From Pelomyxa schiedti (lineage: Eukaryota > Protista > Evosea): a DNA stretch of 64,000 nucleotides. Under the pieces are notes generated by a model. That model saw only the letters and a program-made list of their open reading frames with translations. It made no database searches and had not been told where the DNA came from. Location: contig JAHLWZ010000346.1 in the NCBI GenBank assembly GCA_020536535.1, positions 1 to 64,000 on the forward strand, read 5' to 3'. The position numbers and the translations under genes were made by a program. Each line of letters opens with the position of its first letter. Within the stretch, counting starts at the first letter, position 1. Below, piece by piece: positions 2,059 through 9,423 of the stretch.

Positions 2059-3334
2059 TCATAGACCCTGATACTGCACTGGTTGGTTGTTGTGGTTGTT
2101 GTCGTTTGTGAGTGTGATGGTTGGGTCATAGGACTGGGCTGGAATTGGGTGTATTGTGGGAATGCAGGAGTGCAACAAAAGAGCCTGTTGTACCTGGTCA
2201 TCAGGGTTCATTAGTGGAATCAGGGTGTTGGTCGCGGAGCCTATTTCCAACGCCTCATTAGCTTGCTGGTTGATTGTGCCGATGATAGCGGGTATGGGCA
2301 GGGGAAGGTATGTGGTGCATGTTGTTGGTGCGGTTGATATTGGTAGTGGAGTAATGGGGAGTGTTGCCGGGTTTGTTGCGGGGTCCAGGGGCTCTGGTAG
2401 TACTGATTGCTGTGTGGTGGATAATGTTGGATTTGCTGTTGTGAACGGTGGTTTAGAGGAGCAGCGGCACTTTGTAATTTCCACCCTAAAGTATTGTTCA
2501 TCATCTGTTGGGATGGAATATCATAGGCTGGCATACTCTGTCTGGGTTGCCGCATCACATACGTGCCGTTCCACAATCTCCATGGTTTGCTTCTCTGCAC
2601 GCTTCGATTTTCTCTTTGCTTTTTGCTTTCTTCCAGTTCCAGATTTTCGGGCTGCTTCTCTTGTCGCTTCACGAAGAGCAGTAAAGGCGGCCATAGGGTC
2701 TGGTGCTGCCAAAATTTTCTGCACTTCAGCTTTCCAAGGCTATGTGAAGTTTTAATTGGCTTTGCTTATGTTAATTGTTTGTAAACCTCTCGAGCAAAAT
2801 CTGATAGGTTCGACCACTGGTGTGCAACGGAGGTGAGAACTTCAGACTCTCTTGCCTGAGGATTCAAACGTTTCACCTCCTCTCGAACGGAAGCTCGTAC
2901 GGAATTAGCATACAGAAGGTACGGAGTCAGCCACTTCATGTTGTTCGGATTCCGTGTAGAGGTGGGTGTTTCACTTGTGACTGTTGTTGTGGATGTTGCA
3001 TCAGAAGATGGTTCAGTTGGCTGAGTATTTACAGGGGTTGGTCCAGTCACTGATTTTTTTGTATTTCTGCGTCGTTTGGCCTGCATAATTAACACTTAAC
3101 TTTTTTGCGCACAGGTGTTGGTTATTATTGTTATTATTTTAAATTCAGTATCTTTCACTGATAGGTACTGCGTTACATGAGGGTTTTAGTTTGCCCTGTG
3201 ATACGTGGCTTGTGATTTTTATATGTAATGAATGTAGCGATTAATACGGGACACACACAGAGGGCTGAGTTGGCTGATCCTCGGCACAACCACCACCAGC
3301 AGCGCTGCCAGATTCTTGTTTCGCCGTCGCAGTC

Positions 3335-3365
<31 letters not shown>

Positions 3366-3750
3366 GCTGCTGCTGCTGTTGCTGCTGTTGCTGCTGCTGC
3401 TGCCCTTGATGCTCCTGTTTATCGGGTTCCTTGACGTCGTGCTTGTGCTTCTGCCTGCGTGTGCTACGTCTCGGCTGTGGTTGTTCTTGTTGTTCTTCCA
3501 GTTGTGGTTTCGCCTGCCGCTGCTGTGGTTGTTTCTTCTGGTCGTCCTTGTGTTCCTGTTGGGCTTCACCGCCCATGTCACTCGTCGACAGGGAGGTCCC
3601 GTTGTGGTGGTCGTCGAGTGCCGATTGCTGGGCCACCGCCCCCGGCGCGGCTTGTTGCTGTTGCTGTTGCTGCTGTTGTTGTTGTTGGGAACTGGGCAAT
3701 TGCGTGTCCGCGGGAGCCAAGCTGACGTCCGCTGTACCGTCTCCCATCAT
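2059..3750 (-). CDS. Q/N-rich HMG-box DNA-binding protein (multi-exon)
   Basis: WLTPYLLYANSVRASVREE...SEVLTSVAHQWSNLSDFARE, spliced (GT at ...AGAG|GTTTAC, AG at ...CATAG|CCTTGG) to PWKAEVQKIL, forms an HMG box. Poly-Q first exon starts at ATG 3750; the last exon ends at 2059. Confidence 0.75.
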
Positions 3751-3911
3751 TTCGTGAAAAAAAAAAGACAGAGGACCGGGTAGCCGGGTGCCGACCAAAA
3801 CACACTTTCTCACGCGAGAGATACAGAAGGGGGGTTGGTACGCGGGTCCCAGTGGGACTGCTGACATGCTGATGAACCCCGAGAACTCCGCGAAGATTGT
3901 TGTCACTATTT

Positions 3912-4000
3912 GGCTGAATAAAATAATCAACAGACCGGAACGCTGTCATTTTCGTTGTCATCGCTCAGGATCGGCGGTCTGGTGTTTTTTTTATTCAGCC
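3912..4000. mobile_element. 89-bp MITE, copy 2
   Basis: Same terminal inverted repeats as copy 1, flanked by direct repeat ATTT (3908-3911 and 4001-4004). Confidence 0.8.
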
Positions 4001-4209
4001 ATTTGACAGGTGAAAACGTGTAGCACCACTGCACCTACTACACTACTGCCTGGAGCTGGCACCACATCAAGGACGAGTGTCCAAGCATTGTGAATTCTGA
4101 GCTGCAATTTGGGACGCACACTTTTAATTTTTTGGGTCAACATGCAATCAAATAGTCGTTTAACGGGGTATTAATAATTAACTATTAGGCGAACTAATGG
4201 CATAACTGG

Positions 4210-6162
4210 TCAGTCGGGACCGTCACTGGTGTTGGTGTCGTAGGCGATTGTTGGGGGCGGCTTGTTGTTGACCCAGAACTGATGGCCCCAGACCAGCTTG
4301 ATCACGGTGCACAGGAGCACGTTCCACGACACCCACACGCTGCCCAGGATGCTGAACCACACCTTGTCGTAGAGGTCGAGGAGGTCCGTGTCTATCAGCG
4401 CGCACGTAGCGTTCTCAACCACGATCAGGCCCAGCGTCGTGAAGGCGACGATGATGTAGAGCTGCGGGTGTGTGTGTGTGTGTGTGTGGGAGGGAGGGAG
4501 GGAGGGAGGGATTGTGTGTCAGTGGCGCGGGAAGGAATCGAATCAAGTGGACTGGCACACATCGATGATGGTCAAGTATGATATCCTGGGCAAATATGCT
4601 GATGTGGCTCCTTTGAACGCCACGGCCGTGAGCAGAAGAGTAAGTGATATGGACAGCCTGGTCTGTTTGGGTTTTAGTTTTTGGCTGTTATTGCTATCTG
4701 TTCACCTGCTGGTCAGTGGGGTCGATGCAGGCCGAAAGAAAGCCAAGGGATATTATGAAGAACAGGGGTGTCATCAGATTTCCAGCATAGAACCCGGACC
4801 GCCTCTCTGCTTCTGTTTGGATGCAAAACCCCTCTGCCTTGGTTGTGGGCTCAGGCCTGCATACATGCATATTTCATTCTGTAAGTGAATATATGTAACA
4901 CCAAATGGGAACATCACGCACAGTAGTTTTCTTATCTTGGGATTTTCTGGAAACCCAGTGACCCACTCCACTTCGTCACAGTCTCTCTCAGTGTATCCAA
5001 ACCCCTTGAACTCAAACGTCACTTTCTGAGACTGGGATTGAAAGTTAACAAACACGAAAAAGTTTTCACTCTGAGTGATTCTCACCTTCTGCTTGGTGGT
5101 GTCATGGCGCACAAGAACACGGAACAGGTGCTTGTCGAACGGAAAGTTACGCAGTGAGAAGTGGTCTTCGAACCTGCCAGCAAGAATGATGGTGTAAAAC
5201 AGGGTATCCTCTTTCCCTTTTTCCCCCACTGTGATGAACTCACTTCGTATGTCTGGCGGAAAGTGGTTAGTTGTTAGAGGGGTGCGACAGTTTGGCTGGC
5301 AGACCTGTTTGGGTTGCATTTTCAATAAACAAAACTGGCTTCCAGACTTTATCGACATCCAACTTCTGGCCAGTGAGTTGATCCAAGGGAGAAGACAGTG
5401 CGCTGGCAACACCAAGGCCACCGCCACCCATCGCGGTGCGGATTGCCTCGGGCAACGTGCTGGGAATGGCCAGCCCCTCCTTGCAGGAGCTAAACAGTAC
5501 CTTGTCCACATCCCCCATTCTCCAGCTCATCGTGATGACCAGGTGCAATCCGAAGTTGTGGTTGATCAAGTCCACGTCGAGCTTGGACACCTTCACCACG
5601 TCGATTCGGATTGGGATATTGGCCTGAGTCTGTGGAAGTGGTTCTCCGTTGAGCTGGGCTTTTATCAGATGCCTCTCCAAAGGGTTAGTAATGCCTGCTT
5701 GTTCCAGGATCGTGTTGTTGGTGCCCCTAAACTTTACATCAGAAACGGATGTTGTTGACGAATCATGGGGGCGCCACAGAGACAATAAAAGAAGAAGAGA
5801 TACTCACACATCAATGAGTTTTTTGAGGTCATATTTTTGCTTGAGAAGAGGGACGGTGTGCCTCTCCAGACCAAAGTCCCAACCGTCATCAATGTGTCTC
5901 AGCCATGCTCTCAACGCCAGATCTGGGACAAAAAACTCGTAAGCCTGCACCCCCTCTGTTGAATGTTACTACCTTTCGTTGTAGTCTCGGGGTCAATTTC
6001 AGGTTCACTTTCCTCCTCTGTGTGCATTATTAAATGTAAGCCATCGAACAGGAGAGAACTCAAACCTGTAGATGACGCAGCCCGTCGGCGATGATGAGTG
6101 GTGTGGTGGTGTGTGTGGCGGTGCCTGTGCCTCGTCTGGGAGTGCGCTTCGCTCTCTGACAT
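4210..6162 (-). CDS. Cys-less (Pro-loop) pentameric ligand-gated ion channel with N-terminal SAM-like domain
   Basis: Extracellular-domain motifs VWKPVLFIEN and GRFEDHFSLRNFPFDKHLF; pre-M1 RRSGFY; M1 LMTPLFFIISLGFLSACI; M2 RLSISLTLLLTAVAF; M2-M3 LPRISYLTIID; M3 LYIIVAFTTLGLIVVEN; M4 VWFSILGSVWVSWNVLL. Exons are joined by GT-AG introns; the 5' exon structure is uncertain. Confidence 0.85.
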
Positions 6163-6465
6163 TTTTTTTATTCTCTCTTTCGGGTAAAGTAAATTTTAAA
6201 ATTCAAAAAAAGCAAAGTTACTTGTTCCGTTTTTTATCTGACTTGCATTTCGGCCATAAAAGGACACAGTCCATCTGCTGCAGAAACACCCACTTGATAT
6301 CTGGGCACTTGCACATGATCTTCTGTTCTTTCGTGGAATAAGAATTACCGGAAACGTTATCGAAGAGCTTTTTTAAGGAAGGGAAAGGAACCCATTAAAA
6401 AATAAAAAAATAAAAACCCAAGAAGAGACAGAAAACACACAACAAACACATCCCACCTTGCAAAG

Positions 6466-6929
6466 ATGCAGGTCAGAATGAACATCCGCATCACGATGAG
6501 GGTCATGAACGGCTGTGGGGACTCTGTTCGAGATGGAATGAAGCGCTCTCTGATGGACTCACTCTACAAGCAGTCCGGTGGAAACATCGAGTCCGAGATG
6601 GGCGGCTGCGGCTTCAGGGAGAGCTTTCCCAACAACGGTTGGTCCGGGTTTGACTACATCATTAACGCTCCAATTGTGGTCAATGTCGAGTATGTTTCCC
6701 TTGACTTTAGCACCATTAACCAATTACCTTCAGCCGACTTGTGAAAAACACTGTGCCTGGCCCTTTTGCCCATTTCGGCTCCAAGTTCTTGTCCAATGTA
6801 ACAGGCTATGACCCAGTAGCGAAAATAATTCGGTCCCAGCTGGATGCAGCAATCAGACAGAACCTTGCCGAAGCTGACTGGACTGGCTTTGGTGCCAGTC
6901 TCAATGGGGTTGAGGTTACTCTTCGATGA
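6466..6929 (+). CDS. Small hypothetical protein (about 140 aa, 2 exons)
   Basis: ORF from ATG 6466 joins, via intron GA|GTATGT...CTTCAG|C, the frame RLVKNTVPGPF...GVEVTLR*. No family recognised. Confidence 0.6.
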
Positions 6930-7034: not shown

Positions 7035-9423
7035 ATGAGCAACGAACAGCAACAAACACAGGCACAACAACCCCAACAGGCGCAGCAGATGGCGCGACAG
7101 GGTGTTACTGATGTAGCGCGCAAGGAGATGCTAAAGCAACTGCTGTGCGTGTGTGTGGGATGGACTTCGTGATGATGACATTTCTCTTTCCTCCCCTCCT
7201 CCTCCTTCCCGTCGCCCGCACCCCCGCTGTTTTTCCCTCTTTCCTCCTTTTTCTCTATCAACACGCGCACACACAGGCCACCACATCCAGATACGACGGT
7301 GACGGAGGTGCTTAAATTACTCGAAGTTGAAACTGCGAGGGCACACACGAACAACTTGGTGTGTATGTGTTGGCTAGTGTAATAGCCGCGCTTTGTGTGT
7401 GTGTGTGTGTGTGTTAATCCCATCACATTCAATTATTCAGTCTTTCAATCAGGATCACCCAACATTACATCGCACGCATTGTCGCTCCCCAAATAACCTT
7501 GGCGGAGTGTAAGTTTGAGAATCTAACACAACCTTCTTTTGATTGAGTGCAGGCGGCGTATCGGATTGCAATCTCGAATTCTCTCGAGGAGGCGTTGAGG
7601 AATCCAAACCACCAGAAGAATGCCGCTCTGAGTCTTCACACGCAACACTTTGAGCGCCAGATCGGCAACCTGCGGCAGTCAGCTCCTCAGAATACTGTGC
7701 TGCCGCCTCAGCAACTATTGACACAAAGGCCACAACCACTCTTACAAGGCAATCAACAACTTCAAGCGCCACAACAAATGCCACAAGCGTCATCACAGCA
7801 ACCACAACAAATGCAACAATTTACTGCAAACTTCATGCCAAAAATGCCTGCCAAGCCACAGGTTCTTCAGCAGCACGGAATGCCACAAGGTCCTCAGGTT
7901 CAACAGTCCATTTCACTTCAACCACAGATAGTATACATACAACCCCCCCAACAGCAGCAGCAATCATTAACTTCAAATGCCCCTGTTGGGAATATCAACA
8001 TCAACAACCCACAGTTAAACTCTCAGGCAAAATTTGTGGATTTAACCCCAGACGAATTTCCCAATAACCAACGAATTCCCCCGCAGCAAACACAACAACT
8101 GCAAGCCCAGTTACAGCAAGTCCCACAACAGCTGCAAGCATCTCAGTATCAGACAGCATTATCAGCACAACACCCGACAAGACAGTCGCCGGCACCCTCC
8201 CAAGTTGCACCACAATCCGCTCAAATGAGACCACAGAATATGGCACTTCCACAGCAGGCCCAACTTTTACAGTTGCAGCAGCAGCAGTTGCGGCACTATC
8301 AACAAATCCAATTGCAACAGCAACACATGCAGCCGCAACAACACCTGACCCAGCAGCAGGCACAGAATCAGCTGGGCGCCAATGCACGGTACGGCACACA
8401 GCCGATTTCTATTCCTCCCAACTCCACTCAACTTCAAGCCAGTGGTACCACACCTCCAATGTACATGCAACAGCAGCAAACAGCCCTCCCTCAGCAACCT
8501 CAGCTGCAACCACCTCAAGAAATACCATCTCAGGCCTTCCCACCGCAAATGTCAGTCAATGCACAACTTGCTCTTCAAACACAAACGCAATCTCATCAAT
8601 TGGGCAAATTAATGCCACAATTTCCTCCACAAACTCAACTTCCACTGGTGCAAACAAACACACCGCAAAAGGTGCCCCTAATTCCAGGACAATCACAGCA
8701 ACCCCAGAGAGTGTATGCTTACCCGTACCCGCCCTCACAAGGCGTGCCAAATATGCCCCAATTTCATCAACAGGCACAATTTACACACCAGCCGCAGACC
8801 TCAACCCAGTTGCAACAAGTGGGAGTCACTCACGTGATACGAAACACACCACTCGAAGCACCACCTGCAGCAACCCCCAATACCGCCACCATTGGGAACC
8901 TGTCAGGAATATTCGCCAGTCAGACAGGGCCCTCCGGCCCCCATGCGGCTGTCAAGAATTCTCCGGACTTCATGAGCACATCAATGGCGGACTCAGGGCC
9001 AGTAATGGTAACATCAACCGTGACAACGGCACCACCACCGCCAACACAACAGGCTCTTGTCATGATGTCACAAAACACGTCACTCCAACAAGCACCGGCA
9101 CCTATGAACTTCGATTCTCCCGAACTCACCAGTGCCAGTGGACCCGTATCTCGCCTTTCCGAACTCCTCACATCCTCTCAAGATGGTATTACTCCATTAT
9201 TCCCTGGTGATAAACTAACTTTGCAAATGTTACAGAGAAGCAAGAAGCGCAGAAGCTGGAATCGTTTACCCAGAAACTCGAGGTGATCACCCAAACATTT
9301 ACCCCGAGCTACCAAGAATACAAATACGGATGCTCTAAGTGCCTTCAAGAATTCGAAAAGCACTTCGCGCTCGCCAAGACCGCAAGCACAACGCACGACC
9401 CAGCCTCGATGCCCGTGGACTGA
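7035..9423 (+). CDS. Q/P-rich low-complexity protein (possible transcriptional co-regulator)
   Basis: ATG 7035 (MSNEQQQ), short 5' exons, and a 579-aa Q/P-rich ORF (7547-9286). A spliced last exon EKQEAQKLESF...MPVD* ends at 9423. Function is inferred from composition only. Confidence 0.7.

Follow-up and report, generated by a model that had tools for sequence, protein, structure and literature searches.

Which way does a pLGIC (a pentameric ligand-gated ion channel) sit in the membrane when it begins without a signal peptide and carries, in front of its sensor domain, a module of a kind that usually works inside the cell? This question is raised by Pelo_4295, a gene on the minus strand of the 64,000-nucleotide stretch analysed here (positions 1 to 64,000 of contig JAHLWZ010000346.1 from Pelomyxa schiedti; hereafter, the window). 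To our knowledge, every pLGIC studied (from GLIC and ELIC to the nicotinic, GABA-A and glycine receptors) senses its ligand on the outer or periplasmic face. An earlier reading made from the DNA letters alone (the sequence-only reading) had proposed that the gene joins a SAM-like domain to a Cys-less pLGIC, and that the product might be an inverted or organellar channel gated from the cytosol, or one clustered through SAM polymerisation. We find that Pelo_4295 does encode a Cys-less pLGIC subunit fused to what is, with high probability, a SAM fold, and that the most economical reading of its signal-less N-terminus, of its relatives and of the modules these carry is that the sensor domain probably faces the cytosol.

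The gene comprises nine exons between window positions 6162 and 4210, separated by GT-AG introns of 43-99 nucleotides (nt). This structure comes from a three-frame reading of window 4100-6400, minus strand, in which short GT-AG introns link the open segments; the spliced sequence is an exact match to a 486-amino-acid (aa) NCBI entry, "hypothetical protein Pelo_4295 [Pelomyxa schiedti]" (P0001), which phmmer with exon 4 alone also recovered, at 100% identity, from 1.84 billion representatives. Mapping of this protein corrected the earlier exon model in three places: a 45-nt mini-exon (6017-5973) between its first two exons had been missed, the junction within the SAM-like part is KKLID-V-GTNN rather than LID-FRG (donor GTGAGT after 5808, with exon 4 starting at 5726), and the acceptor of exon 6 had been misplaced and lies at 5031 (SQKVTF); the two junctions had been off by only a few bases. 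A paralogue, Pelo_12267 (P0003; 508 aa, 71% identity), keeps the whole architecture, and its locus (L001) has the same nine exons and phases, with the 45-, 115-, 151- and 102-nt exons identical in size. A further candidate homologue of exon 4 (P0002) was rejected as it shares only a short SWRxG(D/E)V(D/E) motif, a chance repeat match; this protein, from outside the window, is 1013 aa long and consists of ~15 tandem repeats of ~66 aa.

Residues ~120-465 of Pelo_4295 are a Cys-less pLGIC subunit by homology and fold, and would presumably assemble as a pentamer. All the family hallmarks that the sequence-only reading had listed are indeed there: loop A reads VWKPVLFIEN (residues 213-222, with W214-K-P216), the Pro-loop FPFD occupies residues 263-266, the four transmembrane (TM) helices, M1 to M4, span about 341-363, 372-391, 401-426 and 437-461, and the M2-M3 loop LPRISYLT corresponds to residues 393-400; the M1-M2 linker TDQQTR is likewise as described. 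No Cys-loop pair of cysteines (13 residues apart, on either side of the beta6-beta7 loop) occurs around FPFD (SLRNFPFDKHLFRV). Seven positions (P264, D266, R337, L380, P394, Y398 and T400) are invariant in a 31-sequence alignment, in which N222 of loop A is nearly so. Within M2, 0' is R371 and 9' is L380; the -1' and -2' positions are Thr and Gln, respectively, most relatives having Asp at -1', and the nearest acidic residues are D367 and D364.

Whole-protein phmmer against the PDB gave sTeLIC (6fl9) at E 5.7e-12 and ELIC at about 1e-9 over residues ~201-422, together with GABA-A gamma2, the glycine receptor (GlyR) and DeCLIC, the matches ranging from E 6e-12 to 1e-8; such agreement far exceeds what chance would give. 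Structure prediction agrees: in an AlphaFold2 (AF2) model based on 31 relatives, the predicted local distance difference test score (pLDDT) is 80-94 for M1 to M4 and for the core of the beta-sandwich, and Foldseek aligns this model to full-length sTeLIC, GlyR and GABA-A chains at E 1e-19, with target-normalised TM-scores of 0.7-0.77. The sensor domain also contains a Gly-rich insertion of ~55 aa with low AF2 confidence; a TM helix within this insertion was considered and rejected, its top 19-residue hydropathy mean being 0.83. Pfam searches with single exons returned nothing but Neur_chan_LBD (E 0.16).

The region that precedes the channel part (residues ~46-113) is predicted by AF2 to be a five-helix bundle, with a pLDDT of 62 in a run that used only the two paralogues and no templates; five helices of SAM-like lengths also appear in the separate whole-protein run. 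When the two-paralogue profile was compared with the PDB, the top three matches were all the SAM domain of SHIP2 (E 0.02-0.1), aligned over helices 2-5 at ~30% identity through GLERH.../...ILEQ.G...PLERH.I. Foldseek against the PDB returned mostly SAM domains, with SHIP2 again first (33% identity), and when VIA-align was run against 48,161 representatives, almost every one of the ~30 best ranks went to a SAM domain, with 56-70 residues aligned and Z-scores of 5-5.9 (BICC1 5.9, CNK2 5.8, EphA1 5.5, SHIP2 5.1). Among structure matches from the ESM Atlas, seven of the ten rows were SAM families. The scores are middling when taken singly, and it is their mutual agreement that matters; we consider a SAM fold quite probable on the basis of these models and profiles. 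The SAM-like domain of the sequence-only reading stands at the level of the fold, with moderate confidence and by sequence profile and three fold searches, while the Pfam SAM models remain silent on it. A word search with residues 40-125 alone matched only the paralogue, and an ESM Atlas feature search with the SAM region gave no usable match. As a side observation, the first ESM Atlas row is a Verrucomicrobiota cluster that combines TatC with SAM_1/SAM_2, another polytopic membrane protein that carries a SAM domain.

The SAM-like domain and the channel belong to the same protein. Exon 4 (5726-5305) is one uninterrupted frame that runs from the last SAM helices through a linker of ~10 residues into the first strands of the sensor domain, so the join does not depend on any predicted splice and separate transcripts for the two parts, of which the earlier reading had warned, are very unlikely; the paralogue conserves this arrangement as well. 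Synonymous sites between the two paralogues are near saturation, and the ratio of nonsynonymous to synonymous substitution rates (dN/dS) is 0.17 in the SAM-like part, 0.11 in the sensor domain and 0.09 in the TM domain, as opposed to 0.74 in the His/Arg-rich head. The low value for the SAM-like part indicates that it is a selected, coding part of the gene. The head has kept its composition between the paralogues, not its sequence, and one could speculate that it serves as a metal- or pH-sensitive tail. In our word searches for relatives, the SAM fusion was found only in Pelomyxa.

Turning to the N-terminus, both the hydrophilic, His/Arg-rich start and the missing signal peptide hold up. Over residues 1-45 of Pelo_4295, Kyte-Doolittle means of 10-residue segments peak at -1.3, neither paralogue has a hydrophobic N-terminal stretch by this measure, and the same scan detected no TM-like segment before M1 in either. 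A true 5' exon encoding a signal peptide, which would have undone the earlier claim, was sought by comparing the two loci, which have no conserved upstream exon in common. The ATG at 6162 is preceded, 36 nt upstream, by a TAA in the same frame, and a small divergent gene starts at 6466, about 300 bp from that ATG; Pelo_12267 has a matching head-to-head neighbour, with gene-to-neighbour distances of 300-490 bp over both loci. Similarity between the two upstream regions ends exactly at the ATG of the neighbour, and nothing else is shared. A hydrophobic upstream open reading frame (ORF; MFILTCI...) was examined as a hidden leader exon and rejected, being the reverse complement of the start of the neighbour (MQVRMNI). 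The neighbour itself (window 6466-6929, plus strand; 3043-3514, minus strand, in L001) has two exons and was duplicated along with the channel gene; in L001 it encodes a protein of 137 aa that starts with MQVRMNI and has no Pfam family.

The relatives of Pelo_4295 place this N-terminus in a broader context. A word search recovered cnidarian and echinoderm proteins named "cys-loop ligand-gated ion channel" as well as oomycete, diatom and metagenomic proteins, of which 26 eukaryote-type sequences likewise start hydrophilic and have no signal; hydrophobic leaders were present in only two bacterial-type proteins (P0005 and P0011), both of which end directly after M4. It is important to note that the signal-less starts include a spliced, transcript-like contig of 1551 nt from a relative that clusters with coral sequences, with an uninterrupted ORF of 429 codons that has no leader and whose ATG follows a TGA located 9 nt upstream in the same frame. 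Two of the signal-less metagenomic proteins carry a further module directly before the sensor domain, namely a WW domain in P0029 (residues 3-30, E 1.8e-11) and an EF-hand pair in P0034 (residues 5-73, E 2e-11); no description of WW- or EF-hand-pLGIC fusions was found in the literature searched. The cytosol or nucleus is where WW domains and, for the most part, EF-hand pairs function, and SAM domains are, as a rule, cytosolic or nuclear. By an established principle, an N-terminal region of ~340 residues with predicted folded domains and no leader would be expected to remain cytosolic, the first TM helix then acting as an N-in signal anchor.

The distribution of charge around the TM helices leans in the same direction. 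Counting lysine plus arginine (K+R) on the sensor side (i.e., the flank before M1, the M2-M3 loop and the flank after M4) against the opposite side gave 6 vs. 2 for Pelo_4295 and 7 vs. 3 for Pelo_12267, with a net charge for Pelo_4295 of +3 vs. -4. The same excess of K+R on the sensor side is seen in all 28 signal-less sequences (the two Pelomyxa proteins and the 26 relatives), with medians of 9.5 vs. 2 and a net charge of +6 vs. -3. The M3-M4 loops of the relatives are 11-28 aa long and net acidic in most, and their post-M4 tails are 22-207 aa long and rich in K/R in most. Because the relatives are signal-less, because a WW or EF-hand module precedes the sensor domain in two of them, and because most have long basic post-M4 tails, we favor a sensor domain that faces the cytosol as the best reading for Pelo_4295, and rate this orientation as probable. 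Whether the same extends to the whole group appears to us evenly balanced: under this broader hypothesis, the Pelomyxa channels and a wider signal-less set of eukaryotic Cys-less pLGICs (among them metagenomic proteins and those of cnidarians, echinoderms, oomycetes and diatoms, with basic tails after M4 and N-terminal modules of WW, EF-hand or coiled-coil-like type) would be inserted upside-down in comparison with all characterised members of the superfamily, the cytosolic sensor would gate the passage of ions through either the plasma membrane or that of an organelle, and the pentamers would be held in clusters or on a scaffold by the SAM domain.

Several observations weigh against the reading of a signal-less SAM-channel with an inverted sensor. 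At the level of the gene, neither the splicing nor the 5' end of Pelo_4295 has RNA read support in the one RNA run searched, and the sole contig of that run on the gene (393 nt, window 4842-5234) is unspliced and colinear with the genome across two introns (the read runs X2-X4 behave as DNA). The published gene models were made with Augustus and refined with PASA and EVM on single-cell transcriptomes, which is not proof for any specific gene (PMC8887013). At the level of the domains, the Pfam models Neur_chan_memb (16.9 bits, cut-off 28.1) and Neur_chan_LBD (13.7 bits, cut-off 26) both stay below gathering threshold, and Pelo_4295 is therefore a very divergent member of the family; SAM_1 and SAM_2 gave no match in searches with E up to 10 and up to 1, and no Foldseek match of the SAM-like region reaches E 0.001. 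As for orientation, the control for the charge count consists of two signal-bearing bacterial sequences only, one of which also shows 4 vs. 2, and an attempt to widen this control gave three loci, all relatives of P0011. The metric leans inherently toward the sensor side through the conserved basic residues before M1 and in the M2-M3 loop, the Pelomyxa C-tail is short and not basic, and the charge bias of the Pelomyxa proteins is modest and weaker than that of their relatives. Finally, the Pelomyxa pair sits on a very long branch and its placement is unresolved in the tree, so that we assign it to the signal-less eukaryotic group because of the shared M2 motif (RLSISLTLLLTAVAFK), not the tree; a profile word search for more relatives added fragments only.

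In a conventional alternative, the sensor domain would be outside or luminal, the signal peptide would reside on a missed 5' exon (or export would be unconventional) and the SAM-like bundle would be extracellular, in a position comparable to that of the extra N-terminal domain of DeCLIC. The 5' end without RNA support leaves room for such an exon, AG dinucleotides between the in-frame stop and the ATG could in principle accept one, and one bacterial control has a similar K+R bias of 4 vs. 2. Prokaryotic pLGICs with extra periplasmic N-terminal domains also exist, and DeCLIC, described in PMC9897478, is among our PDB matches. However, the two paralogues both start hydrophilic, 300-490 bp from a divergent neighbour and with no conserved coding sequence upstream, and N-termini without a signal recur in relatives annotated by independent pipelines, as well as in the transcript-like contig, where a stop precedes the ATG. 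The conventional orientation would also put WW and EF-hand modules, a SAM domain (contrary to the cytosolic or nuclear rule) and the long basic post-M4 tails of the relatives outside the cytosol. We thus regard this alternative as unlikely, albeit the strongest competitor of the cytosol-facing sensor.

A different possibility concerns the N-terminal helices only, which might be a lineage-specific cap that resembles a SAM domain by chance, in which case a signal-less pLGIC could still hold. The silence of Pfam on SAM, an AF2 model from two sequences with a pLDDT of 62, VIA scores within a range that the tool's own note describes as common for helical bundles, and the finding of no homologue of the region beyond the paralogue in the word and feature searches would all fit such a cap. 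Yet the three best PDB profile matches are one and the same SAM domain, over helices 2-5 and at ~30% identity, SAM domains top three structure libraries while covering the whole domain, and a separate whole-protein AF2 run gives five helices of SAM length; a chance resemblance is accordingly a somewhat more doubtful proposition than the conventional orientation. Most improbable of all is a decaying or non-channel relic (a pseudogene, or a protein that has ceased to conduct ions), even though the very long branch, the Pfam scores below threshold, the low-confidence insertion of ~55 aa in the sensor domain, the -1' Thr where most relatives have Asp, and the absence of expression evidence in the RNA run could each be taken that way. 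A relic would not be expected to keep an intact frame across nine exons in two paralogues, strong purifying selection that is strongest in the TM domain (dN/dS 0.09), and all the coupling and pore residues that are invariant in the superfamily. On balance, the locus is likely a functional gene for a Cys-less pLGIC subunit.

What we infer about the orientation, gating side, pentamer formation, SAM role and host membrane of this channel can be combined into one model. The subunit would begin with a disordered His/Arg-rich stretch, followed by the five-helix domain of SAM type, ~10 residues of linker and the beta-sandwich sensor domain. Because there is neither a signal peptide nor a membrane helix before it, M1 is most likely an N-in signal anchor, and would insert as such; the cytosol would consequently contain the SAM and sensor domains in their entirety as well as the M2-M3 loop and the C-tail, and the two short acidic loops, M1-M2 and M3-M4, would be exposed to the exterior or to the lumen of an organelle. 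The channel would then be gated from the cytosolic side by some ligand or ion, and five SAM domains at the apex of the pentamer might serve to cluster the channels or to dock other SAM proteins. The host membrane could be either the plasma membrane or that of an organelle.

The features of the gene on the window are collected in Table 1.

Table 1. Exons and domains of Pelo_4295, with window positions and the evidence for each.
Feature	Window position	Strand	Evidence
Exon 1: non-hydrophobic N-terminus rich in His/Arg, aa 1-32, with the start codon at 6162-6160	6066-6162	-	Exact mapping of P0001; hydropathy scan, dN/dS
Exon 2: acidic 45-nt mini-exon EEESEPEIDPETTTK, aa 33-47	5973-6017	-	Mapping; same position and phase in paralogue locus L001
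Exon 3: SAM-like helices 1-3, aa 48-86	5808-5922	-	Mapping, AF2; paralogue counterpart also 115 nt
Predicted SAM-like domain, aa ~48-113, split by intron 5807-5727	5645-5922	-	Profile, AF2, fold searches, dN/dS
Exon 4: SAM-like helices 4-5, ~10-aa linker, sensor strands beta1-beta2, ~55-aa Gly-rich insertion, loop A	5305-5726	-	Mapping, AF2
Exon 5: sensor strands including Pro-loop FPFD (5145-5134), without Cys-loop cysteines	5086-5252	-	Mapping, 31-sequence alignment
Exon 6: sensor strands beta8-beta9	4922-5031	-	Mapping, AF2
Exon 7: beta10, pre-M1 Arg (R337), M1, acidic M1-M2 loop DPTDQQ	4706-4856	-	Mapping, alignment
Exon 8: M2 TRLSISLTLLLTAVAFK (9' Leu, L380) and M2-M3 loop LPRISYLT	4561-4662	-	Mapping, alignment
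Exon 9: M3, ~10-aa acidic M3-M4 loop DTDLLDLYDK, M4, 25-aa C-tail, stop codon (4212-4210)	4210-4461	-	Mapping, AF2

A few characteristics of the surrounding sequence were also recorded. The last intron of the gene (4462-4560) contains a (GT)n run and, after it, (GGGA)n microsatellites; the read analysis treated 4457-4523 as a repeat. Close to the gene on its 3' side, window 3910-4005 has a word depth above 13,000 in the DNA runs, compared with about 3-18 over the gene; it is also a place where many contigs terminate or branch, and has the look of a high-copy repeat, either of the genome or of its amplified DNA. Two neighbouring ORFs are rich in polyglutamine encoded by CAG/CAA: one of 229 aa on the minus strand (3241-3930), with long Q runs and no Pfam family found, and a Q/P-rich one of 579 aa on the plus strand (7547-9286).

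If the cytosolic orientation is true, the implications go beyond this gene. A branch of the family with a cytosolic sensor would amount to a pentameric channel gated by intracellular ligands, which would be unusual for pLGICs, and would mean that the pLGIC fold is able to work in either orientation. Ligands for the orphan Cys-less pLGICs of protists and invertebrates would have to be looked for on the cytosolic face, with organelle membranes considered as well, and the SAM fusion would offer a ready-made handle for clustering or scaffolding. Our literature search, the coverage of which was incomplete, turned up neither a fusion of SAM with a pLGIC nor an inverted topology in this family nor pLGICs that lack a signal, which is weak evidence for novelty.

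Among channels with solved structures, Pelo_4295 is closest in sequence to the bacterial Cys-less channels sTeLIC (6fl9) and ELIC (2vl0/2yn6), which are its best matches (from loop A to M3) and have the same fold. The likeness includes the lack of a Cys-loop disulfide, a very short M3-M4 loop, the FPFD motif, the pre-M1 Arg, the 9' Leu and the M2-M3 motif LPR(I/L)xY(I/T)T. The Pelomyxa protein differs from both in having ~120 extra N-terminal residues (the His/Arg-rich stretch and the SAM-like domain), a 25-aa tail and the ~55-aa insertion in the sensor domain, and identity in structural alignments is 16-18%. Solved bacterial pLGICs have periplasmic sensor domains, and the bacterial relatives recovered here (P0005 and P0011) have hydrophobic N-termini of the cleavable type, whereas the Pelomyxa protein has no signal.

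With the Cys-less pLGICs of eukaryotes, Pelo_4295 shares the M2 motif RLS(I/V)xLTLLLTAVAFK. Such channels of unicellular eukaryotes and some metazoans, the closest group that has been described, were inventoried by Jaiteh, Taly and Henin in 2016; the paper lists stramenopiles, chlorophytes, opisthokonts and alveolates, and its main text does not contain the terms Amoebozoa, N-terminal domain or signal peptide (PMC4795631). Oomycetes, diatoms, cnidarians and echinoderms, which supplied relatives in our search, are taxa of the kind inventoried in that text, and the Pelomyxa gene extends the family to Amoebozoa, a group that the same text does not name. In comparison with these eukaryotic channels, the SAM fusion was seen only in Pelomyxa, and -1' is Thr instead of the Asp that most of them have.

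The extra domain itself resembles the SAM domains of SHIP2, EphA1/A2, CNK2, BICC1, tankyrase and SARM1 in being a predicted five-helix bundle of ~65 residues, and differs from these in that the Pfam SAM models miss it. In terms of overall layout, DeCLIC offers the nearest parallel, since it too has an extra folded domain before the canonical sensor domain and is among both the sequence and the fold matches of Pelo_4295. The N-terminal domain of DeCLIC, however, is not a helical bundle of SAM type and is periplasmic, located behind a signal peptide, whereas the extra domain of the Pelomyxa protein is, as modelled, a small five-helix SAM-type bundle of the cytosolic kind that follows an N-terminus with no signal peptide.

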